The translations under genes and the position numbers were made by a program. Positions 2,443-25,558 of a stretch of 64,000 bases of DNA are shown piece by piece. The stretch lies in IMG/VR virus record IMGVR_UViG_3300020147_000065, positions 124,001-188,000 of that record. One strand, given 5' to 3'. The notes under the pieces are model-generated. The model was not told the DNA's origin. It searched no databases and worked only from the letters and a program-made list of their open reading frames with translations. Numbering within the stretch: the stretch's first letter is position 1; every line of letters starts with the position of its first letter.

Positions 2443-4481
2443 TAACCAACCTCTTGTTCTCGCCAGTTCTTACCACCGTCGTATGAAATCAGACGATGGG
2501 CTGGGTTCTCCTGGCCTGTTTGTAAACCGTTTATGATAAGTGTAGCTGTGGCCGATTTCATTGTAACGAGGTCGAAACCATATGTGTTTTCTTTTCTTTT
2601 TTCGGCTACGTGCATTATTGGTCCCTCGTTTTTCTGGATAAACAGGTGCTTACCAGACTCACCGAGGTAGTATCTCGCTCCTTGGTACTTTACGCTATCA
2701 AGAATTTTGATTAACTTATTGCCGTCGAAAATTGATTCTCGGAATACTTCACCGTTAAGGAATTGTTCTTCCCAGTGTTTTCCACCATCATGTGATATGA
2801 ATCGGTGGTTCTGTGCGGCAATCGTCATGTAACCACGACCGGGTGTTTGGTCTTCTTCGATGCGATAGTCGTTATCCTTATCTTTTCTACCCACGGGGTA
2901 AATATAATCCCAGCTATCACGACTTGTCTGATAGAATAACCAGTCACCTTTCTCAGCTAATACCTGTATTTCACCGGTATTCTTACGCGTCACATCAAGC
3001 AGTGCGTAACCTTTTTCTTCATTAAACAAGCTTTTCTGAGCATTATCCTGTTTAATGTAGATATAAGGATCATAGTTTCCCATTCCATCCGAAATGTAAA
3101 CACTGATACCGTTGTTTTCTTGAGTCAACGCATAAATGGGTCCACCCCTTTTACGAACGAGTAGAGCGCCACTTGCACCTTTGATGACTTCCTGATGGCC
3201 GATTTCAGAGGTCATATTTCCGGTGTCGTCGGCTATCCTCTTACCGATTGTGATACTACCGTTTGCGTTAGGTTGCACGAGGTGATGTACACGATTGGGT
3301 GTGCGAACACTGCCAACCACGGTATTACCAAGTTCATAAGAAAACTGCCATTCGGCAGCACGTCCTCTTTGTGTGAAAGCAGTCGAGGAAAAGCCGTCCA
3401 TAATCAATTTAAGTTTAGAACCATTTGGAATTCTAAACTTATAGATTGGACTGTACCACCAGCTACTTACGATACCGCCGTTGTCCGTGAACTCGTTACC
3501 GTTGTTCGGGTCCAGTGACCCGAACTCGGCTCTGTTACCCCAAAGCATTGATTTATAGGTTGGATGATCGGGTGTTAGTTGTCCAGGATTCTTATAATTT
3601 AAAACCGTGTCAAGACCACCAATAGTCATTGTCTGTATTTCACTTCGACAATGGTTGTTATTGAAGATTTGAACGCTGATGGCATCACTATAAGTCACTT
3701 CGCTTCCAGAGACAGCTTTGATGCGATAGAAGTATTCCTGTCCAAATTGCGCGGAAGTGTCCGTAAACAAATAGCGTGTAGTAGAACCGGGCTGCAACTG
3801 CATTCCGCCGGGAGGACCAATATTTGGAGCATTCCAGTTAATCGTAATTTGCCCATCCTGGCTACCATTATCAACTCCTCGGTCAATAAATAATTTAACC
3901 GGAGCAGAAGGATCATTAATGTTCTTTGGTAAGCCATCATAAATAATGTTTACACCCTGTTCAGGGGCACCATAAACGTTACTCTTAGCTATCAGTAATG
4001 GTGGATTAGGAATTTCTACAACATAGTCATCAGGAATACGCTGCACACGCTTGGGTTTATATGCATCAGTTCGATCCTGTCCCTCTGTCCATAAGAAGTC
4101 GTTAAGGCTTGCACCGCCCAAACCACCAAAAATGAAGAACATGGCGTTGATACAAATATAAACGCGCTGCCAGAAGATTGTATTTCCACCTGGGTCTTCG
4201 ATACGATACTCGAATACACCCAATTTATTTTGTAATACGATATTGGGAACACTCATTATAGGCGCGACAGCACTCACGGGAGGTAGCATTCCGGCTCCCT
4301 CCCGTGGATAGGCTTCCCAAAAGATATTTTTCTTTAACTGAAATGCGGTGATGTCTCCACCACCGGTATCAAGCTGATAAACCCATATCTTTCGTGTAAC
4401 AAGAGGAGGACCGAGGTCTAAAACTTCCTCGGCCTCATCTGTTGACTTGAATGGTTTCCAGTTTCCAAAAGGTGCTTGCAT
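2442..4481 (-). CDS. Tail protein with FN3-like and Asp-box/BNR-like motifs
   Basis: 679 aa directly after the tape measure gene; FTDTSAQFGQEYFYRIKAV is FN3-like; two SxDGGxxW Asp-box motifs (SHDGGKHW, SYDGGKNW). Confidence 0.65.
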   Translation of the reverse strand: MQAPFGNWKPFKSTDEAEEVLDLGPPLVTRKIWVYQLDTGGGDITAFQLKKNIFWEAYPREGAGMLPPVSAVAPIMSVPNIVLQNKLGVFEYRIEDPGGNTIFWQRVYICINAMFFIFGGLGGASLNDFLWTEGQDRTDAYKPKRVQRIPDDYVVEIPNPPLLIAKSNVYGAPEQGVNIIYDGLPKNINDPSAPVKLFIDRGVDNGSQDGQITINWNAPNIGPPGGMQLQPGSTTRYLFTDTSAQFGQEYFYRIKAVSGSEVTYSDAISVQIFNNNHCRSEIQTMTIGGLDTVLNYKNPGQLTPDHPTYKSMLWGNRAEFGSLDPNNGNEFTDNGGIVSSWWYSPIYKFRIPNGSKLKLIMDGFSSTAFTQRGRAAEWQFSYELGNTVVGSVRTPNRVHHLVQPNANGSITIGKRIADDTGNMTSEIGHQEVIKGASGALLVRKRGGPIYALTQENNGISVYISDGMGNYDPYIYIKQDNAQKSLFNEEKGYALLDVTRKNTGEIQVLAEKGDWLFYQTSRDSWDYIYPVGRKDKDNDYRIEEDQTPGRGYMTIAAQNHRFISHDGGKHWEEQFLNGEVFRESIFDGNKLIKILDSVKYQGARYYLGESGKHLFIQKNEGPIMHVAEKRKENTYGFDLVTMKSATATLIINGLQTGQENPAHRLISYDGGKNWREQEVG

Positions 4482-7400
4482 TACGTAGCCTTATTTAATT
4501 GGAATCGGTCACGCTTAATGACCTGAACGTTTACAGTATAATCTGAGTCCTGCACGTAGTTGGTTTTAACAGCAGGGGTACCAGCGGCAACCGATGCACC
4601 CTGTATTCTTCCCAAACGCTGCATTGCCTCAGCATCGCCACCAGCTTTGTAGTTACCACGACCAAAGTCGTAAGTATCCGCATGATTCAACCTGTTCATC
4701 AAAGTGTTTGGTAACACATGTGAACCTTGAGGTAACATGACCGCTTCTGGACCACGTTCTCCTACGATAGTTAAACCACCGGCAGCACCGCCTCGTGCTC
4801 TCTTTGGAGTGGCCTCAGCAAGAATTTGTGCTTGTCGAGCTAACAAATCTTTACGACGTGCTCCGCTGAATTTACCAAGCTGTGTATCAGCTAACTCGTT
4901 CAAACGAGCTTCGCTTGAAGCCGAAGCGAGTTGCTTGAGAGCTTCAGGTCCCATTACCGCTGAGTACATGTTTACGAAGTTCTCGTCTTTCAAAGCTTGC
5001 ATACCGGAAGTGTTGATTTTCCAGCGAAGTTGTTCTTTATTCAACTTCTGCAAAGCTTCCATCTGCTCTGACTTCTTAACCTGACCCATAGCCAAGGCAC
5101 CTGTGATTCTATCCACATCTTTTGATGTGTAAGCATCTTCGATTTCTGCGTTGGCAAGAAATTCCTGGATTTTTTCTCCTCTTCTTTCATTTGTAATCAA
5201 ACGACTTTTACGGATTTTATCCATTGCTTCTGCGCGTTTTCTTGCTTTCTCTTCAGGAGTCATGTTGACCTTTGCTTTGAGATCATCTCTCAACGCAATT
5301 AGGTTTTCACGAGCTTCGTCGGTTCGCATTTCTGGAGCGGCAAACGCTCCAAAGCTACGAGTCTTAACTCCTTCTTTATAGTCACCTGTAGCCGCGGCAA
5401 TTTGCTCATCAACAACTGTACCGGCAATTTCTTTACGATAACCTGCGATACTCTTGTCAATGTTCTTGGCACTACCATAGGCATTTCTTGAGAAATAAGA
5501 ACCAAAATATGCACCGGGTAGCGAGAATAGGTTTCCGATGGCACCTACCGCTGTTTCAGCAGCCCACCACAATGGGTTCTTCCATGCTCCATTCTTGAAT
5601 GGATTCTTGGCCCATGTTCCTGCGCGACCATAAGAAGCAAAATTTTCCTGCTTCTGTTTCTCGGCCTGTAGTAATGCAATTGCTTGCATACTTTCTGATA
5701 TTCTACCAATAGGCTTACCGTCTGGTCCAACACCACCCATAGTAGCTTCCCATGCCATAGAATCTCGTTCTGTGACGTTAGCCGCAGAGATAAGACCAAA
5801 TGCAACAGGCGCAGCAACAAGTGATGCGGGTCCTGCTGCGGCAGCAATGCCACCCAAACCAAGCCCACCTAACGCTGCTCCTATCTGAGGTAATGCGGTT
5901 ACAGCAACAGCACCGAGCATTTTATTACCCGCACGTCCGCTTCCAACTCCATAACCAAAACCACTACCTTTGAAAAGGTTTAATGAATCCATACGATCAT
6001 CATACCATGAGTCGGTACCGTAGTTTCCTACTCGGCCCATGCGACGTTCGTGTTCTATTCCTGCTTGTTCAACGTCGAGAGTGTCTTTCATTGATAGACC
6101 GGCACCAAGTACCTGACCGGCAGGACCAAGAGCATTGAATATTTTTCCACCGGTACCGCCACCTGCTCGAAGCAGTGTCGCACCGACACCTTCAGTAGCA
6201 AGTCTGCCTGAAGCAAAGTTTCTACCCCACTGTGAACGTGATAATAGGGACGATACTGTACCACCATCCTTTAATGGTGGTACAGCCATTGTTATAGTAG
6301 CTGCTGTAGTAGCACCATCAACAAGTCTGGCTTGATTACGGTATCTTTCGATAATCTCTCTTTCAGCTTTAGCTCTCTGTTGATCGTTTAATCCGGCATC
6401 AAGAGCTTCCATCTCCCTGGCTTGCGCCTGTTGTAGGTAGATGTGAGCGGCCATTTGAAGAGTACCAACGTTACCATAGGCTGCCCATGCACGACTACGG
6501 AATGCACCAACACCACTTCTTGGAGTACCATCTGCTTTTAGACCCAACGCAAGGAAGTCGTTAGCTGTCATTTGTTGATCACCTAACGCGAAATCCCATG
6601 CTCTTTGTCCAAAGCCGCCGACACCTCTTGTGTTGAAACCACCTTGTAGTCCCGCAACACCGGCACCCTGTTGTGCGACGAAGTCCTGGATGGCAAGACG
6701 ATGGTCACGATAACCGCCATCTTCATAGAATCGCTTGTATGCAGCCGACTTTGATACATCACGAGCACCCGAAGAATCTTGTGTTATTCCTTCGAACATA
6801 CTTAGGAAGTCTGCGATAGAGCGACCACCAAAGATGGCTGTGGTGTTACCAACGAGTCCGCGAAGGCGTCGCATACGATATTCGCCGCGCTCGTTTGCTG
6901 ATGCTCCCTCTGATATGTCTAATCGTGTAGAAGCACCAGTCTTACCCTTTTCGTAGTTATCAGGATCAATTAAATTGTTTAATCTGTTACGTAAATTGGT
7001 TGCGTCACCACCACGGGTCTCGGTACGCACGATACGATCCATAAGATCGTTAATTAATTCTGCGTTTCCTCGTCCGGTGAATCGGTTAACGTCATTGCGA
7101 CCTACCTTGGTGGACTTACCTGTACCGAGTACAGCAGCTTCGTTGGCTTTGATAGCCGCAGCAGCTTCAGTAATAGCGTCAACACCGACACTAGCTGGAT
7201 CAGTGTCAATCCAGTTACCACGAGCGTCTACACCGTCAACAGGCATCCATTCACCCGTGGCCGGCAATCTGCGGAACGATTGTTCCATACCATTAGACAA
7301 ACGAGTACGAACAACATGGTTACCACGATAGCGGATGGCTTTTACACCACCTGCTTCGAGGCCAACCACGGATGGATCAAGAATACCTGATCCAGTATTG

Positions 7401-10400
7401 AACCACTCGTTACCAACAGTTGCGTTTCGGTTGATAGCCTGGCTTACACGGAATGACCTGTCTGCACCAACTAATTCTTCTGATACAAAAGAGAATAGAC
7501 GCTGTTGTTCACTTATTCCTGTTGTGGGATCAACAATACCGGCAAGATCACCGATAGCATCACTGAAGCCGAAACCGGCCAACATAGTTTTTCCGCCACC
7601 AACATCTGTACCGGCGAGAATATTAAAACCAGCGCCTCTATGATTAAAAGATGTGGGATTTCCTGTACCGTCAAGTGTAACACCAAATGACTTACGCATT
7701 GTTTCCATTACGTCGTCAAATGATAGGTATCTGTCAGCCGTAGGATGACTGTGCATAACTGTTTGGTTAGCATTGTAATCCCAACCGGTTAATGGATCAA
7801 TTGAAACACTGGATGCATTTCCTGTGTTTGACGATAGAACACCGCGCCCTGCTTGCCATAACACGGCTTGTTCGTTGCCTGTACCGAGCATGGAAGCCAT
7901 TACATCGGCTGTAGCGGTTGAGTGGAAATCGCCGCCTACGGCCCCAGTAGCCGTAGAAGCGGCCTGAGCAAAGGCGAGACGATTACCATATCTTCCGGTA
8001 AACGAACCAGTTGCGTGAGCACTACGAGCAGCAAGAACTACCTGCGCTCTTTCCATATCCTGATCAATTTGAGTATTACGCTGTAGTGCCTGATCGTGTG
8101 CTCTACGCGCGGCATTGTATTGTCTGGTTATCTCAGGATCATTTTCACCAGCATTTATACGGGCGAACAATTCGTTGCGTCGTTCTTGTAGGATGTCTAA
8201 TTGCGTCTTTCCATCGGGACCACGCAGACGAAGCAGATCGCGCTCAATACGAAGTTCATTGAGGTTATGAGCAGCTTCCTGGGCTTCCAGATGACGCAGT
8301 TGATTAGATTTATCCGCACCCAGTGGTCGGTTTAATACCTCAGATATATCACGTTCTTTACGTAAGCTACTTAGTAGATCAGTATCAGGTGCCTGAACAA
8401 CAGATGAACCCGAAAGGATACTTGCTATATCATGAGTACCAGTAGCATAAGTTCTCGATTGTCCACCAAAGGCATTGAACCCGAAGGTCATGCGTGAAAA
8501 CGCTTCCAATCCTCTCTGTGAGAAGCTGGATGCAAGTGCGGTTGTCTTACCGGTTTGAATATCAGGACTCCACTCACCAAAACGAGCGCGGTAGGGTTCA
8601 CCAAGTCGAGTAACAACCTCATTCCATGCGTTTGAACGACGCAGGAAGTTGCTGCTATACTGATCTTGCATCTGCGTATAAAACGCATCTTGTAATGCTG
8701 TATTTTTTCCAGCTTGACGTTGTGCTGCAATATATTCTGCAATACGTGGTTCACTTTGCCATGCAATTAAAGTATTAGGATCAACTGTGTGAGATACACT
8801 TCTCCCAGTCTCAGCTTGCTGTTGTAAAAACGAATCAAAGGTTATAAAAGAGTCTAACGTTGAGTTACGATTTGGCCCACCCACAAAAAGGTTATGGGCC
8901 TTAACTCTTTGTAATAAATCGGCTCTATCTGAATCAGATATACCTCTTTTTAATTCAGGTGGTAATCTTTCTTCAGGTACTTCAAGTAAAACATTTCCAT
9001 TATTATCAAGAAGCGTTTTACCTCTCTGTACCCTAAATCTAGTATCTCTTTCCGCAGAGTCTTCTCTACCAATAGTTGTGGTATAGTTTTCAGGAGAATC
9101 CCCGAAACCGCTTAGTGAACTACCTGTAACAGCCGAGAAAGGTAATCCATGACCAAAGTAGGTATCATTAACATTCTGGTGAATCATGAAGTTACCTGAC
9201 GCATCAGTGTACTTCAACATAGAGTCGGCCCAAACCTCAAATGATCTTTCACCAAGTACTGCTGGTACTCCACCACCACCACGACGGCGTTCAACTAAGT
9301 TTTCCTTGTTGGCTGCTTGTTGTTTCTTTAGATTTTCTAAAAGAGTTTCTCCACCTACGTCAGAAAGGTCTACCCAATCTTGATTGTAAGCTTTTTCACG
9401 GAAACTATTTAATCTTCTTATTGTTTCTTCATTGTCCGGTGATGCAAGAGCAGATTGTTGTAATTGCTGCGCTAATTCCCGCACGAAAATTAACGGGTTA
9501 GCACCACTTTCTCCGTAATTATAACGACCGGAAATTAACCCTTCAACTCTTGGGTCTATGGGGGCCAATTCAGCAGACAGTTGACTTGTTAAAGGACCAG
9601 CTCCTCCTTCACCTGCAATAGCCTCAGCTAATAACATGTAGTTGCGAACATCTGTTTTAGGTGCTTTTCCTTCAGCTTCAAATTGAGAGAATGCTTCAGT
9701 AAATATACCACCCCATTTACCGGCAATTGTTGATGGGGTTCGAGGAACTGTATTAATTTGTGATACAAGATGATTATAGGTTTTTTCAATATAAGAAGCT
9801 TTAGTTGCTTTATCAACCTTCATCCCTTTTGCTTTTAGGTTTTCGTCAACAAAAGTCTTAGCTTGAGCACGTAATTCCTGTGAACGAGTTAGGGCCTTGG
9901 AAGTTATCTCACGATTTGCTTCCATTTCTGTCTTTTGCGCTCGAATAGCGTTGAGTTGAAGTTCGTCTTTTACTACATTCCAGGCGTCATTACCGGTTAA
10001 TGTAGGATCAGCTTGTACCTTCTCCAACATTTTCTGTATAGGATAAGAATAAAATGCTCCTTGTGCATTCGTCTTTCTATCTAAAATACCGAAAACGTGG
10101 GGATCAACATCCATTCCTAATTCTGCCATTAGGAAGCTTGGAATTCCAGTTAAATCAGCAACAGCTCTTCTTTGCTGTTCTTCGTTGAAACTTTTAAGAT
10201 CAGTTCTAAAACCAACTGTACTCGGATGTTGAATCAAAGCCGTCTGCATTTTTTCATGCACAAGATGTTCAGCAGATAAAGAAGGAACACCTTCAAATCC
10301 ACCAATAAGACCACGCATTATTGCATGACCTTGATTATCAAATTCTGTATTTGCTTTTAATGATGCAATAACTCCGGTTTGTGCATTGGTTCTTGCGGCA

Positions 10401-12410
10401 ACACTATCCTTTTTCTTAGCAGCAGCAATAATACTGCGATGTTCATCAGTTCCAGCTAATTTTTTAGCCGTATCCAGGTCCACACTTGTACGATACATGG
10501 ATTGCATATATCGGTCTTGTAAAACCTTGATACCTTTGGCTGCGTTTTCACCCGTAGATTCTTTAATGTCGGACCACAGTTCACCAACAGGTTTATCAAA
10601 TAGTTCTCTTTCAGACGTAGCATCACCGATGGCTTTATGTGGAATACCGGAATTACCAAAGTTATAAGCATCATTGTCTCTAACACGACCTAAACGCTCA
10701 ACTTTATGCATACGGTGATTAGGAATAACATGAGAGCCTTCCGGTAGAACGACAGCCTCAGGTCCACGCTCACCAACAATGGTAAGACCACCTGATTTAC
10801 CACCCATAGCACGGTTTTCTACTTCGTAAAGAGGCTTTGAACGATCTCTCTGAATGTCCGGCTGACCAGGAGAACGTAATTCTCTAATTCTGATGGGAGG
10901 ACCACCAGTATCATCCGGTGCTTCGATTTGACCGGAAGCAATAGCACGAAGAATAGGACGGTTATCTTCGCCTGGGAATTGTAGACGCTCTTTTTGACGA
11001 CGCTCAATTTCAGCACGAGCAGCCTGACCGAACAAGTCCTTTGTGTCAAGTTCTTGACGAGAGGTGCCGAAACGCTCTTTCATCTCGTCGTTTTCTTTAC
11101 TGGACTGTCCTTTCAAGTATCTACCAAGCATGTAGGTACCAAGAGTAGCAGCACCAACAAGTGGCATAACACGCTTCATCATGAAGCCGCCAAAGCTACC
11201 CTGGAACTGTCCAGACATCAATGAAGCAGTATACATAGCTGTGCTGAAACGCATGATAGGTCCAGCAGCCGCACCGAACATGAGGGCCGTAAACTGGATT
11301 TCGGGGCCTAAGCCACCGAAAGCCTTAACCATCTTGTTGGCGATAGGGATAACGTCTCGGCCCATCTTGATGGCACCGAAGATAACGTCCTGCATAGCAA
11401 TACCAAAGTCAGCAAGTTCTTTGGTATAGGCTGCCATAACCAGACGCCCCTGGTTGGCCGCAGAAGTAGGATACGACTTTAAGAAGTCACCCTGAGCGTT
11501 CTGCGTCTGGTTCATGATTTCACCGAAGGCTGCAAGAACCTTCTGTTGCTTATTTAATTCAGAACCAACTTCAGCAATACCGTTTTTGTATGCGTAGTTC
11601 TTTAGTGTTGTCTGGTCAAGCGACACACCATAAGAGTACAAAGCACGGGTGTTACCGATCATACCTGACGCGAGGTTGGTCATAACCCTTTCTACAGGTA
11701 AGTCATAGTACGAGGACATGTCAATGCCCAACTGTACCATAGCCTTCGACATTTCCAGAGCTTCTCCGCGAGGAATCTTCAAAGCTGTGGCCAGGTTCAT
11801 GAAGATAGCAGCCTGACGACGAACCTCATATTCGTTCATCGAACTGGCTTTACCAAGACGTTCAGAGAAGTCCTGAATATCTTTGTACATGTTACCGAAT
11901 GTACGACCGGCAAGGTTTTCTGATTCTAATACGGCAGAACCGAACTTTACTCCGAAAGCGGCTGCCGCCATTTCCATCGAGGAGAATGCTTCACCGACAA
12001 ACTGTGCTCCAGTGGCAAAAGCCATACTGTTTGTTTGGGCAGTTGTGCCAAGGCGTCCGTACTGTTGACCAACGGTACGGAGCTGGTTCATCATCTGGTT
12101 ATCAGGTGTTATCGTGTGGGCTTTTTATCCCTCACTTCTTATAGTTTCCTATAAGTTCAGCATATATTTTCATCCTAATAGGATGTTCGGCACTCGTGGA
12201 GGGATTATATTCTTGAAAGTTTCACCCTCTATGCGTTACACTGATCTGAACTCTTTAATTTTCAGATTTAGCTCGGTATTCCCATGGTTACCTTTAGGGT
12301 TCACCGATTTTGCCGAATTTTCACCAATAAATTACTTTATTGGGGACCATAACCTTAGTGATTTAGCCACTTAACACAAATCTAGTTGCAAGGATGTCGG
12401 TGATTTGCAA
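4481..12410 (-). CDS. Tape measure protein, spliced (exon 1 12410-12365, exon 2 12102-4481)
   Basis: 2537-aa ORF with TMP-like N-region (MVQLGIDMSSYYDLP...LASGMIGNTRAL) and GG..VGERGPE motifs; removing the intron gives in-frame MQITDILATRFVLSG-Y-NQMMNQLRT from a TTG start preceded by AGAGGT. Confidence 0.88.
12103..12364 (-). ncRNA. Group I self-splicing intron (262 nt, no internal ORF) in the tape measure gene
   Basis: Minus strand shows P3 UUCGGCA/UGCCGAA, P4 UCGGU/ACCGA, R-like UGUAACGCAUAG, S-like AAAAUAUAUGCUG, terminal G, and IGS GGUUAUGGUC pairing both exon ends (GGCU and AUAACC) with a U-G pair at the 5' splice site. Confidence 0.88.
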
Positions 12411-12415
12411 TCTGT

Positions 12416-13213
12416 TTACCTCTGTAAAACTTTATTCCATTTTCTTTGTAGTAAAGGAAGTCTTGAGTCGACCTGTGCTACAAAATCTTTTGTTTGCTCT
12501 TTAGTAAATCTCAATCTAAAAATAGAATTGAAAGCACCAAATGAACAAGGATACTGTACCATTGTCCCAATCCAACTGACCACTTTTGATGTTCCCAAGA
12601 AACTCATAGTTTTATTAGTTTCTACGTATCCATCACCATCAAATAATCCACATACGAATGCTATACTACATTCATGATTCAAATTTGTTGGTGGCTCAAG
12701 TATTAAAGACTTAGCAGGGATAATTCCAAAGTTTTCCTTCAGATCTTTAATCCACTGTGCTGCTCCACAAACAGTTAATCTTGTCCAGGGTCGAGGATTT
12801 GTTTTAGAAAATCCTCTATCATTCATGCCCTCATACAATTTCCCGTTAAAACCTACCTGAGACGCAAAAAGTTCCAGATGAACTTTATCTTTGCTATCCA
12901 GTTGGACTGATACTTGTTTATTTCTTGGGGTATCAATTATCCAACCGTCTGCGGCTAAGAACCCTGCCCAATAACTATTCAAAGGTGTTGGGTAAGTAAA
13001 GAAAGAAGAATCATACTCTAATTTCTTGTTCTTTTTACCGATAGCTGATTTAGCACATCTGGAACATTTCCAGTTTTCTTTTACGTATTGACGCTTTGTT
13101 TCTTTCTCAAGATTACAATCAGGACATTTCACGCAGACTAGTTTGTTAGAGCCTGATGAAAGTTCTAAGGGATTGTAACCAAAAGTAGACAAAGTTTTCT
13201 CGAACATTATCAT
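12416..13213 (-). CDS. Free-standing LAGLIDADG homing endonuclease with N-terminal zinc ribbon
   Basis: Two motifs YWAGFLAADGW and FVCGLFDGDGY; N-terminal CPDC...CSRC. Confidence 0.9.
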   Translation of the reverse strand: MIMFEKTLSTFGYNPLELSSGSNKLVCVKCPDCNLEKETKRQYVKENWKCSRCAKSAIGKKNKKLEYDSSFFTYPTPLNSYWAGFLAADGWIIDTPRNKQVSVQLDSKDKVHLELFASQVGFNGKLYEGMNDRGFSKTNPRPWTRLTVCGAAQWIKDLKENFGIIPAKSLILEPPTNLNHECSIAFVCGLFDGDGYVETNKTMSFLGTSKVVSWIGTMVQYPCSFGAFNSIFRLRFTKEQTKDFVAQVDSRLPLLQRKWNKVLQR

Positions 13214-18065: not shown

Positions 18066-19190
18066 TTAGAAGATGGTGTAGGAAGTGGGAGCTACATATT
18101 CTGTCGCAGCAGAATCAATGTAAAGAACCACAACCTTGTGACGCTGCCAAGGAGCAATTCCGTAGTAGCGGTCGAACACTTCCGCGTGTAGCGGATAGGT
18201 GCGATGCTCGTAACGAAGTCCGAGTTCAGCGTTGCGTCCACCGGGCATTACACGGTAAGCGAGAGGCTTGTCGCCAGGCTGACCGAGGTCGGCTACAACA
18301 AGATACTTCTGAGGTACCCAGCTACGAACGGTAACAAGAGCACCGTCGAAGTAACCGATGTTACGGTTGTACTGGTTCTCGAAGTCGAGAGTCTCGCCAA
18401 CAGCGTAAGCGCGGTTGGGGTCAACTACGTTGGCCTGAGGGAAAGCGTAGAAGCTACCGTCAGATGCGAAGTTGAAGAATGCCTGTACGAAGGCGTTCGA
18501 GATGAAGATACGGACACGTCCGCTTGTTCCATGCTCACGAAGGTTGGTTAGTGCAGAGCGTACAGCCGTGCGGTCCAACTCAGTCGCGTACATGTAGTGG
18601 TTGTGTGTATCAGGATCGAACAACGTGCCATCAATAGCAGCAGGAACGGGCTTGCCGTCGCCATTAAGGAAGGCGTAGATGGGGATAGAACGATAGTCTA
18701 CCATGTAGTCTTCGTAATCCTCATCGTTTGTGGGGTTGAAGATCGCGTTCATCAAAGTGGTGCGGAAGTCCGCAACGTCACCAAGAAGAATAGCGCGTAC
18801 TGTCAACTGGAACTTAGCCAGAGACATTTCTTCAAGCGCACGGGTTGTCCACTGGACAGCCGCTTCGGACTTCTCAAGAGGGAAGCCCATTGTGGTACCA
18901 GTACGAACCTTCGATACGAGCGGGTTCGAATACTCGTTACCACGGACCATGCGGATGCGGGGTACGCCACCGTACACGGCCTGATAGTCGGTTGTAACCT
19001 GGCAGAGTTCATCTACCATTTCTGCAACCAACGAGTTATGAATCTCAAGAACACGAGCTACTTCAGCGTAAGCCTCTTCTTCACCGAAATCGGCTACGGA
19101 GATTTCGCCGGTATTAACTCCACCGAAGTTAAGAACTGGGCTGGTGTCTCTAAGATCGTGTGTGCCTAATCCCATTAGTTCACTTGCCAT
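18066..19190 (-). CDS. Major capsid protein
   Basis: 374 aa after scaffold and decoration genes; strong AGGAGTG SD; distinctive high-expression-like codon usage; HTHY-like HNHY motif seen in related capsid proteins. Confidence 0.8.
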   Translation of the reverse strand: MASELMGLGTHDLRDTSPVLNFGGVNTGEISVADFGEEEAYAEVARVLEIHNSLVAEMVDELCQVTTDYQAVYGGVPRIRMVRGNEYSNPLVSKVRTGTTMGFPLEKSEAAVQWTTRALEEMSLAKFQLTVRAILLGDVADFRTTLMNAIFNPTNDEDYEDYMVDYRSIPIYAFLNGDGKPVPAAIDGTLFDPDTHNHYMYATELDRTAVRSALTNLREHGTSGRVRIFISNAFVQAFFNFASDGSFYAFPQANVVDPNRAYAVGETLDFENQYNRNIGYFDGALVTVRSWVPQKYLVVADLGQPGDKPLAYRVMPGGRNAELGLRYEHRTYPLHAEVFDRYYGIAPWQRHKVVVLYIDSAATEYVAPTSYTIF

Positions 19191-20449: not shown

Positions 20450-22186
20450 TTAGGTATTATTTGACCCTCCAGCGACCGATTGGGACGCTACTGAGCGACT
20501 AATTGATGTTCCGGGGCTATTTCCACCGGATGCTGGAGCGGTGCCTGAAGCACCGCGAACAGCCTTAGCTGCTTGTGATGTTTGTGGGGTTGCCGAAGCT
20601 CCAGAAGGTACAATATACTTCTGGGCAACAGCGGATAACGTCTCCGCTTCCTCCTTCATTTCTGCAAGTTTTCGCTTGCGTTCTTCTTCACGCAACGTCT
20701 CAATTTCAGTTAAATCTTCTTCACTATATCCTTCTTTTATAAGAACATATTTTAGAGGAATATCTGCTCTCATTGCCGCTGCATATGAAATATATTTTTC
20801 ACGATTTGTAATAGCCTGGTCATATTCGGTTAGTTCGATAACCGGACGAGGATTAATCGTAAAGTCGAGATCACCTTTTGCGTAGGAATCCATATTGAAC
20901 GATAAGAATTTCTTCTGTTGTTCATTTAGGACAGCCCAGCCAGTGCCCTGCGCACGTTCGTTGGCTCTCATTCCACCAATTGCTACAAGCATTCTAAAAA
21001 GAGAAATAGTAGCATGGTCGTAATTCTTTGAAGCCTGTCTAACAGCGTGAACCAAGTCACCGAGAGACTTACCAACTGCCGGCCCCGTGGTTTGCGATAA
21101 TGTTTTTAGATAAGCATATACAGTAATCTCAGGGTGATCGTCAAGGATTTCCTGCCATGTATCTTTTAATACACCTACTGTTTGAGCAATATCAAGGTTA
21201 CCATCTAATTTATGAACTGAACCGTTTTCCGATGCTACTAAAAGAAACATGTCTTCGAGTAGGATAGGGCTGCCATCCAATTCAGAAGTAGGAGGGTTAA
21301 CGGTGCCCATGCCAGCAAGCAGGTTAGGAGATACGGATTGCTTGCGAAGATACATGCGCAAGCGAGTATAATCTGAGTTATATTCCTCGATTTTTCTCCA
21401 GTCTCTAATTGCAGGTTTTCCGGGAAGGAGATGAACACCAGGATCATTGTGTTTGCACCACACTAATGGACAAAAACCATAAGGGTTTTCATAGACAGGT
21501 GGAAGACCTTCATATCCGTAAGGATCGTCATTACGGAAAGTACGAATTTCTGTCTTAGTAACTTGCTTTTTCTTTGTGTAATATTCCTGTTTATCAGGGT
21601 CCCAAACTTCGATTACCTTCTCATACTCGATTACGTTTCCACGCGGGTCGAACTTAACGTCGGTAATTTGTTCCGGGCGAAGAACAGTCGGATATACCTG
21701 ACCACGGGTGAGGTCATCTGTGGCTTCTACGGGACCGTCTCCAAGAGAAGCACAATAGGTGATCCAGGTTGTTATATTACTTTCCCAGTTACCCCACTGC
21801 CAGATTTGACCAATAGCCCGACGTAGTTCGTCGGGCGTTTTGTCACTTAGAGGAATAGCAAGAGGAATATTATTGGCTACAGGATAGCCTGTGCTTGATA
21901 GATAGCCAGGATAGATATGAGATGCGTAAAACGAAACTACTCGTGAGAAAGGATTTTTAACACAGATAGTTTTTGGATGTAAGTCACGCTGCTTGAGATA
22001 AGGCCCCCACTTCTTGTTATCAACAAAAATGGTATTATCCAAAGCATTCTGCATCACATAATACTGAAACAGACGCTTTTCGTAAGTGCTGTTTGCAGGG
22101 TTGATATTTTCAAAGTTGTACCAGCGCGACTTGTATGAACCAAACAACTCGCTACCCATTCTGGCCACTCTACCTAATAGACTCAT
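20450..22186 (-). CDS. Portal protein
   Basis: 578 aa directly downstream of TerL; YENPYGFCPLVWCKH resembles the SPP1-type portal NPxGxxPxV motif. Confidence 0.85.
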   Translation of the reverse strand: MSLLGRVARMGSELFGSYKSRWYNFENINPANSTYEKRLFQYYVMQNALDNTIFVDNKKWGPYLKQRDLHPKTICVKNPFSRVVSFYASHIYPGYLSSTGYPVANNIPLAIPLSDKTPDELRRAIGQIWQWGNWESNITTWITYCASLGDGPVEATDDLTRGQVYPTVLRPEQITDVKFDPRGNVIEYEKVIEVWDPDKQEYYTKKKQVTKTEIRTFRNDDPYGYEGLPPVYENPYGFCPLVWCKHNDPGVHLLPGKPAIRDWRKIEEYNSDYTRLRMYLRKQSVSPNLLAGMGTVNPPTSELDGSPILLEDMFLLVASENGSVHKLDGNLDIAQTVGVLKDTWQEILDDHPEITVYAYLKTLSQTTGPAVGKSLGDLVHAVRQASKNYDHATISLFRMLVAIGGMRANERAQGTGWAVLNEQQKKFLSFNMDSYAKGDLDFTINPRPVIELTEYDQAITNREKYISYAAAMRADIPLKYVLIKEGYSEEDLTEIETLREEERKRKLAEMKEEAETLSAVAQKYIVPSGASATPQTSQAAKAVRGASGTAPASGGNSPGTSISRSVASQSVAGGSNNT

Positions 22187-24855
22187 CTTCTATAGCCTCC
22201 ACCGAAGTGTCGTTGCATATAATCTGCGGTTGCAGATGTGATTATAGTTTTACCGGACCTCACTTCGGCTTCTGCCATTGCCAGATTAAATGCGTCCGCA
22301 TCGTCAGGAGATTCTTTCAGACGCTTTTTCATGAGGTCTTTCTTCTCTACTTCCCGACGGGTTTCTTTGATACCAGGACGCAAAATATATTTGGCGGCTT
22401 TTAGCTGACGGCCTAAAATAGCCCAGGATTCTCCACCTTCGCATTCTTCTATGCGTGAAATGTCAATTCCGGCCTTTAAATCACGATCTGTAGAATCTAC
22501 ATTATTAGCTTTATCAGCCGAGATAAACCAAAGTTCACTACGACGATTAGGATAACGATCCTTATTGTAAGCCTGTGCAGAAGAGTCTACTCCGACGAAA
22601 TTAAAGTTTCCTTTGTGAGTATATACAGCGTTGTTACCTGTAATATCAATCATGATGGGAACTGTTTCAGCAGTCATTCCCGCATGATCTCTTCCCCACA
22701 CTCCGGCCAAAACCTTTAATCGGTCAGCCGTCATAATTTCATCCCAACCGTGATGTCGCTCATGCCAGAGAACAGTCTTCCCTCTGCGAACAACGATGGC
22801 CGTTTTGTCGGCACCACGTCCAGCAGGGTCACAACCGATTTGAACAGGTTCGTCAATGTCTTCCGGTTGCTGTTCTTTACAGGCTTCCCACATGGCCTCA
22901 GACCACAGGGTATTATCAGAGCCGGACGGCCAACGACCAAGAACACGAGGTTCGAAGTCACTGGCAGCCCGTGGTCGGTAATAATATCTTTCCCATGACT
23001 CAGGCAACTCATATTGTTTACCAAAGTAGGTAATAATACGAGGTGGCCATTCAAAGTCACCAAGTTTGGCTGCGTCAGAGGAAATTATTAAACAGTTTTC
23101 CACTATACGGTCATTCACCCATTGAAGGTTCATGTCAATTCCAGGAAAAGGAATTCTTGATGGATCACTGTCGAATAAAAGGTCGGCAAGCACGTTAGGA
23201 TGGTTTAAGGCAGAAAGCCTGATAACCGTCCATGTTTTATTGTTTTCCGATTCCCAGTAAGCTCTCGATGAGATGTCTACAGGGTTAAGAAGACAAAGCC
23301 ACTTCGCGTTGGGGCGAATTAACATACCACGGGCGTCTTCCCAGAAGTCAGCCATGATACCGTCCGCCTCATCGAAGATAAGCATCAGGTTTTCAGATTT
23401 ACGACCACGGAAACCAGCACCGGTAGCAGCCACTAAACCTTCGGCATAATGCGTAACGCTACTCTGCATACGAGAAGCCGAGGGTTTTAAATCCCACATG
23501 CTTTCAGGAAGACGATAACGATGGTTGCGAACTTCTTTCCAGATGATGTCATCAACTGACTTCTCTGTTGGAGCAGTGGTAATCGTAATAGATTCCGCGA
23601 AAGCATCGTAATGCCAGTTGGTCAGTGCCCCGGCGAGATAGCTATTATGCTCATATAAAGAAGTAAGATAGCTTTCAGGACCAGGAACACAGATAGCAAC
23701 TGTTCGCTGTTTTCCCTGCGGTACGATCTCGGATACTTTCTCCCAGTATGTTCCGGGAGGTGCGTCTTTTAATCGCCAGTCAAGACGATTATCGGGATTA
23801 CCTTCTGCAAGAAACTCATTATCTTCGAATACACGAACGTAGTCTTCGATATTGAGTACACGAGCAACCCAGAAATCCTCGCCGTCCTTTTTGTAGACCT
23901 TGCAGGAAATACCGAACTTTAGTAGAGCAAATGCGAGATCACGGATCAATTCTTCAGAACGATGATAGAATTTAACCTTAGCTTCAACATTGTTCTTAAC
24001 AACGAGGGTATTGCAACTAAGCAGGGTCTTGATGAATAGACGTAGCTGGTCTTTCTTTAAAGTGAAGATGGCTTCAGGAATACGACGCTGTTTAAATGAT
24101 TCTGTAATCAGATACTTATTGAAAAGATGCAGGATTGGCCCGGCACCGACAATCTTCATGCGGCTTTGTGTCTGATCATAGAAAAGATCACCAATTTTAC
24201 CATCAAGAAGACCGACAAGTTGTGCGAACTGTCTCTCGCCTTTTTTAATAAGAACGACTTCTTTATCACGAATGAAACAGGATGTAAGCAGATGTGCCAA
24301 AAGTTTGACCTCATCTTCCTCAATTTCATCCTGCCCAAAGGCGGGAAATTCACGAGTTACTGCAACCAGATCACCTGTGGATATGCAACCCACGGATGTC
24401 CATCCGTTCACTGTAGTCTTGAACTGTTTTCCTGTCTTTACATTCTTAGCGGTCCATAGCGGATGCTTATTGTTGACGATAACACGGCGACCGGACTCGG
24501 TGATTACTTCATAAACGTCTTCATATTCGTTCCATTCGGCTGTTGCTTCAACTTCACGAATTCCGTCAGGTGTAGAGGTTAACGTTTTAAATGTTTTCCC
24601 CACAACCTGTTTGGCCTTTACTTTACGGCCATCCGAAAGGTAAACCCAGTCGGATTCTGCTTTACATTTACCAGATGAGTGGCAAGAAAGCACCATGACT
24701 CGTTTATTCTCGATTAGAGCGCGAGTAATCGCCTCTTGGTCGGGAGTAATACGAGTTCTTAGTTGGTCATTAATATATGCAATTGGGTCATCCGCGTATT
24801 CAGGAAATCGAGCCGTCTTCGAGGGCTGAGTGAGAGTTCTCACTATGTCCCCCAT
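22183..24855 (-). CDS. terL: Terminase large subunit containing an intein
   Basis: Walker A SCHSSGK/S split by the intein, Walker B LIFDEADG, nuclease IGCDPAGRGAD and C-terminal SPDDADA; likely start MGDIVR at 24855 (ORF open from 24930). Confidence 0.92.
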   Translation of the reverse strand: MGDIVRTLTQPSKTARFPEYADDPIAYINDQLRTRITPDQEAITRALIENKRVMVLSCHSSGKCKAESDWVYLSDGRKVKAKQVVGKTFKTLTSTPDGIREVEATAEWNEYEDVYEVITESGRRVIVNNKHPLWTAKNVKTGKQFKTTVNGWTSVGCISTGDLVAVTREFPAFGQDEIEEDEVKLLAHLLTSCFIRDKEVVLIKKGERQFAQLVGLLDGKIGDLFYDQTQSRMKIVGAGPILHLFNKYLITESFKQRRIPEAIFTLKKDQLRLFIKTLLSCNTLVVKNNVEAKVKFYHRSEELIRDLAFALLKFGISCKVYKKDGEDFWVARVLNIEDYVRVFEDNEFLAEGNPDNRLDWRLKDAPPGTYWEKVSEIVPQGKQRTVAICVPGPESYLTSLYEHNSYLAGALTNWHYDAFAESITITTAPTEKSVDDIIWKEVRNHRYRLPESMWDLKPSASRMQSSVTHYAEGLVAATGAGFRGRKSENLMLIFDEADGIMADFWEDARGMLIRPNAKWLCLLNPVDISSRAYWESENNKTWTVIRLSALNHPNVLADLLFDSDPSRIPFPGIDMNLQWVNDRIVENCLIISSDAAKLGDFEWPPRIITYFGKQYELPESWERYYYRPRAASDFEPRVLGRWPSGSDNTLWSEAMWEACKEQQPEDIDEPVQIGCDPAGRGADKTAIVVRRGKTVLWHERHHGWDEIMTADRLKVLAGVWGRDHAGMTAETVPIMIDITGNNAVYTHKGNFNFVGVDSSAQAYNKDRYPNRRSELWFISADKANNVDSTDRDLKAGIDISRIEECEGGESWAILGRQLKAAKYILRPGIKETRREVEKKDLMKKRLKESPDDADAFNLAMAEAEVRSGKTIITSATADYMQRHFGGGYRR
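23644..24666 (-). mobile_element. Intein (341 aa) in TerL Walker A with degenerate LAGLIDADG domain
   Basis: Starts CKAESDWVYLSDG, block B VIVNNKHPLW, ends YEHN followed by Ser; removal restores SCHSSGKSYLAG. Confidence 0.9.
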
Positions 24856-25558
24856 CAAGGACTCTTGAAGCTTTCGTTGCGGTTTCCACGAGAATTCTTG
24901 TGGCAAGGTCTTTATCCTCCAAACGATCAAAAACTACTCCTCGCAACTCGCCCATTACGCGGTTGATGAGGATTTTCACATCAGCGGCTCGCATCATCTG
25001 ATCCAATTGGATATTACGTTTATGCTGAGCCTCTACAAGGTCTTTCTTAGTGCGGATCATACCTTTAATTTCGTCCATCAGGGCGAAATCACGTCCCGCA
25101 CTTTCGATGATGCCACCCATTTGGGCAAAAAGGGCGTTGAATTTGTTCCAGTCCTTTTGATTGGCAGCATCTACACATTTTTCATAATGCTTTAAAATTC
25201 TGGCAATGGCTCCGCCACCTTCGCCGTCACCATATTCGAATTTACTACATAACTCATCAATTAGAGCCTGTGTAAGAGCAATTTCAGGCATGAGTTCGAG
25301 AAGCAGAGGATCATTGGCGGCTTCCTGCATCTTCGGGCCTAATCTTGTTTTCTTTAATGATTCAATGTAACGTCCATCCACGTATGTACCACTCTCCGCT
25401 CCAGATTTACTTCTTCCACCGTGGAAATAGCAAACCTTTTTACCTTTCATAGCCACGGCACCACAGGGCACAAGTTCTTCAGCTTTATCCTTGCGTCTCT
25501 TGTGACCCTGACACCTGGGAATCCATTTGTTTATGTCCCTTCCCTTCGGGTTCGGCAT
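24800..25558 (-). CDS. Terminase small subunit-like protein (HGGxSTG zinc-finger domain)
   Basis: RC...PC...CYFHGGRS motif; immediately upstream of TerL. Confidence 0.7.
   Translation of the reverse strand: MPNPKGRDINKWIPRCQGHKRRKDKAEELVPCGAVAMKGKKVCYFHGGRSKSGAESGTYVDGRYIESLKKTRLGPKMQEAANDPLLLELMPEIALTQALIDELCSKFEYGDGEGGGAIARILKHYEKCVDAANQKDWNKFNALFAQMGGIIESAGRDFALMDEIKGMIRTKKDLVEAQHKRNIQLDQMMRAADVKILINRVMGELRGVVFDRLEDKDLATRILVETATKASRVLDGGHSENSHSALEDGSIS

Follow-up and report, generated by a model that had tools for sequence, protein, structure and literature searches.

The tape measure protein (TMP) encoded by the phage contig IMGVR_UViG_3300020147_000065 contains an exact match to E-x(n)-H-x-H-x7-S-x2-D, the catalytic signature of JAB/JAMM-type (MPN+) metalloproteases. 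The DNA analysed was a stretch of 64,000 nucleotides (the window), which corresponds to bases 124,001-188,000 of a 221,108-bp linear IMG/VR virus record; the record is approximately 89% complete and represents the same contig as JGI Ga0196976_1000013. The initial annotation of the window had noticed the motif and had taken it for part of an injected protease that removes ubiquitin-like (Ubl) modifiers or processes the TMP itself. We find that the motif and the identity of the protein stand, and that the evidence leans towards a real JAB-type catalytic module, predicted to span amino acids (aa) ~1392-1520. Whether this module is a virion-delivered effector hydrolase of toxin-JAB character, belonging to a very divergent branch of the JAB/JAMM (MPN+) enzymes, appears to us an evenly balanced question.

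The JAMM-like motif and its chance expectation

The signature is composed of two strings in the translated open reading frame (ORF) of the TMP, GNEQAVLW and VMHSHPTADRYLSFDD, the first of which contains the candidate general-base glutamate and the second the candidate zinc ligands and oxyanion serine (Table 1). The match to the signature is exact and involves residues E1408, H1448, H1450, S1458 and D1461. The initial annotation had put the two strings approximately 35 aa apart, which is close to, but not identical with, the measured distances: 32 residues lie between the strings, and 40 separate the glutamate from the first histidine. E1408 is the sole glutamate within 60 residues upstream of the histidine pair. 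Its presence adds little to the case, because some glutamate 35-62 residues upstream is expected by chance.

The core motif itself is rare. From the composition of the TMP it is expected 0.0012 times, and it was present in 26 of 20,000 shuffled TMP sequences. Six-frame translation of the window gave a single match, and that of the whole 221,108-bp genome gave two, of which the other one is in a stop-filled frame; thus the TMP copy is the only match in an open frame genome-wide. The serine between the two histidines and the proline following them, which are canonical JAMM residues, are both present and add specificity. The string HSHP-x6-S-x2-D is highly specific for JAB domains generally, and its occurrence here by chance is very improbable. 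By inspection, the spacing of the residues does not fit the M23 (HxxxD...HxH), metallo-beta-lactamase (HxHxDH), PHP or amidohydrolase types of metal site.

Identity and layout of the tape measure protein

The product of the 2537-aa ORF is a TMP, as judged from its homology and from its position among tail genes. Translation required no alternative genetic code. Residues 49-290 matched annotated TMPs in 225 phage records with 26-27% identity (tblastn), including those of Flavonifractor, Gordonia, Arthrobacter and Microbacterium phages, and the N-terminus matched phrog_28918 with an E-value of 2e-20. The N-terminal homology together with the location in the structural gene module bears out the initial assignment of the protein. 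No relative was detectable for the rest of the TMP, outside aa 49-290.

The motif is located in a part of the protein that differs in composition from its surroundings. In a sliding-window analysis the fraction of helix-forming residues was 0.28-0.38 in aa 1361-1640 vs 0.57-0.62 in aa 1241-1360, and loop or strand formers reached 0.53 in the former region. We presume from this composition that aa 1361-1640 represent a globular insertion. The motif thus falls within the least helical stretch of the TMP, the likeliest place for a globular insertion. At 0.475-0.49, the GC content of the motif region is the same as in most of the TMP gene.

Other features of the TMP concern its overall architecture. 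A Gly/Ala-rich hydrophobic stretch is present in the C-terminal part (Table 1); such stretches are usually the membrane-inserting part of TMPs. Two copies of the motif GGLTIVGERGPEAV.LP.GSHV.PN are present, the first following the conserved N-terminal region and the second near the C-terminus. The two copies have diverged at the DNA level, which argues for a conserved functional element and not for a recent duplication, and their positions suggest that a short ancestral TMP grew by ~2000 residues between them. GC content is 0.39-0.41 at window positions ~8600-10700 (TMP aa ~465-1165) compared to 0.47-0.49 in the remaining gene, and the drop begins directly after the first copy of the repeated motif, showing that the TMP gene is compositionally mosaic.

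Language-model neighbours of the motif region

The ESM Atlas feature search was the only method that placed the segment. When aa 1360-1560 were used as query, the best clusters scored 0.86-0.88 and comprised unnamed viral, Bacteroidota and giant-virus clusters as well as Toxin-JAB1 and DUF4329. With the narrower segment aa 1392-1520 the scores were 0.90-0.92, values that are borderline by the calibration of the tool, and the recognition score was 2760, on a scale where 91% of known-family proteins reach 2300. Among the 30 nearest annotated clusters 16 were DUF4329, four Toxin-JAB1, two mixed JAB and at least one Prok-JAB; that is, Pfam families of the JAB superfamily were found in at least 22 of the 30.

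Resemblance to toxin-type JAB domains

The neighbours found by the feature search, as well as several details of the sequence, indicate that the candidate module is probably closer in character to toxin-type JABs (Tox-JAB-2/DUF4329 and Tox-JAB-1) than to the Ubl-deconjugating JABs. Tox-JAB-2 proteins have been described by the signature 'E, H[ST]H, S, D' and occur in Caudovirales, where ORF24 of Xanthomonas phage OP1 was named by Zhang et al. as a phage Tox-JAB-2 (PMC3482391). The TMP segment shares this signature with Tox-JAB-2 (DUF4329, PF14220) and Tox-JAB-1 (PF15659). In the OP1 family 40 residues separate E42 from H82, the same spacing as in the TMP, whereas in Prok-JAB the spacer between the glutamate and the histidines is ~57-62 residues long and contains a helix, for which the 40 residues of the TMP are too short. 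Compared by eye, the glutamate-to-histidine spacer is short, rich in Gly, Ser and Pro and devoid of the Prok-JAB helix in both Tox-JAB-2 and the TMP, and in both a strand-turn-strand follows the helix after the motif. A further likeness concerns the mode of delivery: toxin-type JABs, like the TMP module as envisaged here, are the cargo of an injection device and are delivered into another cell.

There are also differences. The spacing from histidine to serine is 7 in the TMP vs 13 in DUF4329. The toxin JABs are carried by Rhs proteins, by type VI secretion systems or behind a signal peptide, usually at the C-terminus, whereas the TMP module is internal. No adjacent immunity gene is evident, the neighbours of the module being tail genes and a LAGLIDADG endonuclease, and a search among viral relatives of DUF4329 for examples embedded in a TMP found none. 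The literature searched contained no description of a tape measure protein with a JAB/JAMM module.

If the module is what we propose, its working can be sketched by analogy with solved JAMM enzymes. In this scheme zinc would be coordinated by H1448, H1450 and D1461, with E1408 as the activator of the metal-bound water molecule and S1458 as the residue stabilising the transition state; the module carrying them would be an insertion in a ruler protein that is otherwise helical, at its least helical part. As with other TMPs that bear enzymes, we picture the protein passing folded down inside the tail tube, being expelled before the DNA and refolding in the host envelope or in the cytoplasm, where the module could cut a host molecule. 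Its substrate could be a bond of the peptide or isopeptide type, in a protein or in the wall, or it could be nucleic acid, the target predicted for the toxin JABs. Tox-JAB-1 and Tox-JAB-2 were described as lacking the tunnel for the Ubl tail and were predicted to be nucleases (PMC3482391), and Rhs effectors with a DUF4329 domain are annotated as putative RNases, without experiment (PMC10469887). A metagenomic protein of 204 aa (P0049) combines a DUF4329 domain with a LysM domain, which binds peptidoglycan. This fusion is at odds with the nuclease prediction and hints that some DUF4329 members act on the cell wall, an activity that would suit a TMP.

A precedent for such an arrangement is the TMP of phage T5, Pb2, which has a muralytic zinc-metallopeptidase motif and is cleaved during assembly (10.1101/2022.09.20.507954). 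Both proteins combine a short zinc-hydrolase signature with a hydrophobic stretch, and Pb2 is expelled into the envelope at infection (10.1101/2022.09.20.507954). The signatures are of different types and differently placed: that of Pb2 is of the zinc-carboxypeptidase type and is C-terminal to the hydrophobic stretch, whereas the JAMM-type signature described here is ~600 residues N-terminal to it.

OP1 ORF24, the phage Tox-JAB-2 mentioned above, is encoded at 20486-20857 on the minus strand of OP1, in antisense orientation and flanked by genes for a tail component and for the tail fiber. It is a protein of 123 aa with a hydrophobic N-terminus and a weak match to PF14220, and its close relatives are limited to a handful of Xanthomonas phages and metagenomic contigs.

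Could the motif be a coincidence?

The explanation that competes most seriously with a JAB-type module is that the motif is a product of chance, located in a part of a fast-evolving TMP that serves as a spacer or as a structural domain and has no enzymatic function. We regard this as a real possibility, though a less probable one. It is favoured by a series of results, collected in this and the following three paragraphs, most of which weigh against our reading. Searches of the whole TMP and of the excised domain against Pfam, NCBIfam and PHROG gave no match to a JAB family. When five Pfam models of the JAB clan (PF01398, PF14464, PF04002, PF14220, PF15659) were compared to the genome, no match was obtained at E-values up to 10; the candidate module does not reach the 28.6-bit cut-off of PF14220. 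A phmmer search of PDB sequences gave noise only, such as actin and C1q at E > 0.1. Homologues of the region were equally elusive: apart from the protein itself, none was found for aa 1250-1750 among 1.84 billion cluster representatives (phmmer, no length filter), by a word search in 5.8 billion clusters, by tblastn against GenBank phages or by scanning IMG/VR and JGI contigs for the motif region. Because no homologue was found, conservation of the catalytic residues could not be demonstrated.

For a more sensitive comparison, profiles were built from 29 Prok-JAB domains of Bacteroidota, from 58 DUF4329 (Tox-JAB-2) sequences and from the family of Xanthomonas phage OP1 ORF24, and were run by hmmsearch --max (all filters off) and by hhalign. 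The Prok-JAB hidden Markov model (HMM) and hhalign aligned exactly aa 1446-1466 and nothing beyond (1.8-2.6 bits, P ~0.005-0.009). The DUF4329 HMM gave -1.7 to -2.5 bits and an hhalign P of 0.2, and the OP1-family profile remained at noise level. Shuffled sequences in which the 16-residue motif was kept scored as well as the real sequence in 366 and 528 of 1000 cases, which shows that the alignment methods detect the motif only. Similarity to the JAB families is thus limited to these 16 residues.

In an anchored context test, ungapped windows were placed on the glutamate, the histidine pair and the aspartate, and the catalytic residues themselves were excluded. The TMP segment gave z-values of +1.0 (Prok-JAB), +0.9 (OP1 family) and -1.3 (DUF4329), whereas for true cross-family pairs the median was 0.9-2.0 and the value was never below 0; true JAB families tested on the DUF4329 profile had z-values of 0.1-3.9. 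The outcome is indistinguishable from the null and mildly unfavourable, above all for a specific relationship to DUF4329, where the value looks null-like.

The feature search and structure prediction call for similar caution. Atlas scores in the range obtained here are attained by 4-10% of shuffled proteins, the shared-feature counts (160-169) are just below the 170 typical of same-family matches, and the motif alone may account for the neighbour signal. AlphaFold2, run without an alignment, predicted no fold: the pLDDT value was 32.8 for aa 1360-1530 and 34.9 for aa 1392-1520. Both low-confidence models contain a helix at aa 1394-1403, a helix starting from S1458/F1459 and then two short strands; these local helices match the expectation for JAMM enzymes, but at a pLDDT of 33-35 they do not count as evidence. 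Finally, the prior for a new, undetectable JAB family in a TMP is low, and there is a selection effect, since the motif came from a motif-hunting first pass. When many windows are scanned for catalytic-looking strings, rare coincidences are expected somewhere.

Several observations speak against a coincidence. The expected frequency of the motif in the TMP is only ~0.001, and it becomes far lower if the canonical serine and proline are counted. The nearest language-model neighbours form a coherent set of JAB families instead of being randomly assorted, and they come with a high recognition score. The motif also coincides with the only part of the TMP that looks globular. The failure of the HMMs, in turn, is uninformative. 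In control comparisons three accepted JAB families, each searched with the HMMs of the others, reached only -2.7 to +7 bits (medians -1.5 to 3.0), a range that includes the 2.4-2.6 bits of the TMP segment against Prok-JAB; this score was as good as that of true members of DUF4329 or of the OP1 family. The negative profile results are therefore weak evidence, since accepted JAB families also miss each other. A gapped test with N- and C-terminal sub-HMMs gave no signal and had no power even for true pairs.

Assembly protease or deconjugase?

If the module is a JAB-type enzyme, it could also act on the tail itself, by cutting the TMP or a tail-tip partner during tail maturation, as though the role proposed for the JAB domain of lambda gpK had been fused into the TMP. 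JAB domains are established parts of lambdoid and T1-like tail assembly clusters, and the pairing of the gpK JAB with the Ubl protein gpI provides a phage precedent for a JAB in a tail module (PMC1779556). In line with this, tblastn with a Prok-JAB domain matched phage genes annotated as 'minor tail protein' and 'C40 peptidase'. Cleavage of TMPs during assembly is common, T5 Pb2 being an example (10.1101/2022.09.20.507954), and the phage encodes no separate gpK-like protein. The candidate module resembles gpK (JAB + NlpC/P60) in being a JAB-type module from the tail-tip region of a long-tailed, non-contractile phage. The resemblance ends there: gpK exists as a small protein of its own, whose partners are NlpC/P60 and the Ubl gpI, and it has no sequence relation to the TMP beyond the motif, the same being true of its JAB clade. 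No match to Lambda_tail_I (gpI-like Ubl) or NLPC_P60 was found in the 221-kb genome, which leaves such an enzyme without a gpI-like substrate and without a gpK-like partner. Moreover, confinement in the lumen of the tail tube would probably keep a domain from being folded and active while the tail is assembled. We consider a processing role improbable.

Still slightly less credible is a JAB isopeptidase directed against Ubl conjugates of the host, either a Cap3-like antagonist of CBASS priming acting after injection, or an enzyme that strips a Bil-type Ubl from the tail tip during assembly. The motif has the canonical isopeptidase form, HSHP-x6-S-x2-D, and the TMP segment shares with the JAMM/MPN+ metalloproteases (AfJAMM, Rpn11/CSN5, Cap3, BilC; PF01398, PF14464) the E...H-x-H-x7-S-x2-D arrangement including the serine and the proline, a hydrophobic strand ahead of the histidine pair and, in the low-confidence models, a helix beginning at the serine. 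TMPs enter the cell first and lie beside the tail tip, and the tagging of the central tail fiber by the Bil system makes a tail-borne enzyme conceivable (10.1101/2023.09.04.556158). However, the segment matches neither the Prok-JAB nor the JAB Pfam model and shows no profile match beyond the motif; its MPN+ fold is putative. The segment has toxin-type JABs as its closest neighbours, and these are without a tunnel for the Ubl tail (PMC3482391). No Ubl-related gene was found in the phage genome, nor is there any E1 or E2 context. Both variants of the initial proposal, an injected Ubl-deconjugating protease, which had followed only from the family name, and a self-processing one, found no support; a deconjugase aimed at CBASS or Bil is an unsupported speculation.

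The structural gene module

The TMP gene belongs to a structural module on the minus strand (Table 1), in which the order of genes is large terminase, a 578-aa ORF, major head protein, small ORFs and TMP, followed by large tail proteins. The tail proteins downstream of the TMP, located partly beyond the window, are 679, 1277, 1873 and 1812 aa long and contain BNR, VWA, discoidin and FN3 domains. The giant tail proteins of 1277, 1873 and 1812 aa are encoded at genome positions 101107-126442, located outside the window and at its left margin; the 1873-aa protein has a VWA domain together with a weak match to F5/8 type C (discoidin), and the 1812-aa protein an FN3 domain. Among these giant tail genes there are three glycosyltransferase-like ORFs, one methyltransferase-like ORF and one exonuclease-like ORF.

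Table 1. Features of the tape measure protein and of the structural gene module (window coordinates)
Feature	Position	Strand	Remarks
Tape measure protein ORF	4481-12094	-	2537 aa; 30 His, no Cys
Conserved N-terminal TMP region, aa 49-290	11225-11950	-	only part with relatives
GGLTIVGERGPEAV.LP.GSHV.PN, copy 1, aa 435-459	10718-10792	-	25 residues, after conserved N-terminal region
Least helical TMP stretch, aa 1361-1640	7175-8014	-	Gly/Ser/Thr/Asn-rich, helix-rich flanks
Candidate JAB/JAMM-like module, aa 1392-1520	7535-7921	-	ESM Atlas feature search
GNEQAVLW, aa 1406-1413	7856-7879	-	translated ORF
E1408, candidate general-base Glu (G-N-E-Q-A-V-L-W context)	7871-7873	-	40 residues before H1448
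VMHSHPTADRYLSFDD, aa 1446-1461	7712-7759	-	translated ORF
H1448-S-H1450-P-x6-S1458-x2-D1461	7712-7753	-	candidate zinc ligands H, H, D and oxyanion Ser
Gly/Ala-rich hydrophobic stretch, aa 2060-2109	5768-5917	-	Kyte-Doolittle scan
GGLTIVGERGPEAV.LP.GSHV.PN, copy 2, aa 2439-2463	4706-4780	-	~75 residues before C-terminus
LAGLIDADG-type homing endonuclease, free-standing	12416-13213	-	phrog_4645, PF14528
Major head protein	18066-19190	-	phrog_3990
578-aa ORF	20450-22186	-	unannotated, likely portal
Large terminase	22183-24930	-	915 aa, LAGLIDADG insert

Two LAGLIDADG elements are present in the module. The large terminase has a LAGLIDADG_3 match at aa 294-368, a weak Intein_splicing match at aa 127-165 and a terminase match at aa 449-886, and it probably hosts an intein. 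The free-standing homing endonuclease gene is directly upstream of the TMP gene, within the tail gene block.

The phage is a singleton, with a major head protein that is only ~25% identical to the counterparts in Mycobacterium, Arthrobacter and Gordonia phages, and no close relative was found when it was sought by a pattern scan of IMG/VR with the major head protein. The GC content, measured on the window, is 45.6%, which counts against a high-GC actinobacterial host.

Implications

Three lines of evidence, namely the motif, the composition around it and its language-model neighbours, point the same way, and the alignment- and structure-based tests lacked the power to decide. The case illustrates the limits of motif-based calls in orphan phage proteins. 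In outline the JAB interpretation is plausible, with a module predicted from the sequence. If genuine, it would combine known themes: TMPs that bear enzymes, and JAB domains as found in the tail modules of phages or in injected toxins.

TMPs precede all other phage proteins into the host, and wall-degrading enzymes are carried by some of them. A JAB-type zinc hydrolase in a TMP, if the prediction holds, would be a new enzyme class in this injected toolkit and the first JAB domain in a TMP. Were it to act on Ubl conjugates, it would represent a counter-defence delivered before the genome, the first virion-delivered counter-defence enzyme of the anti-Ubl kind.

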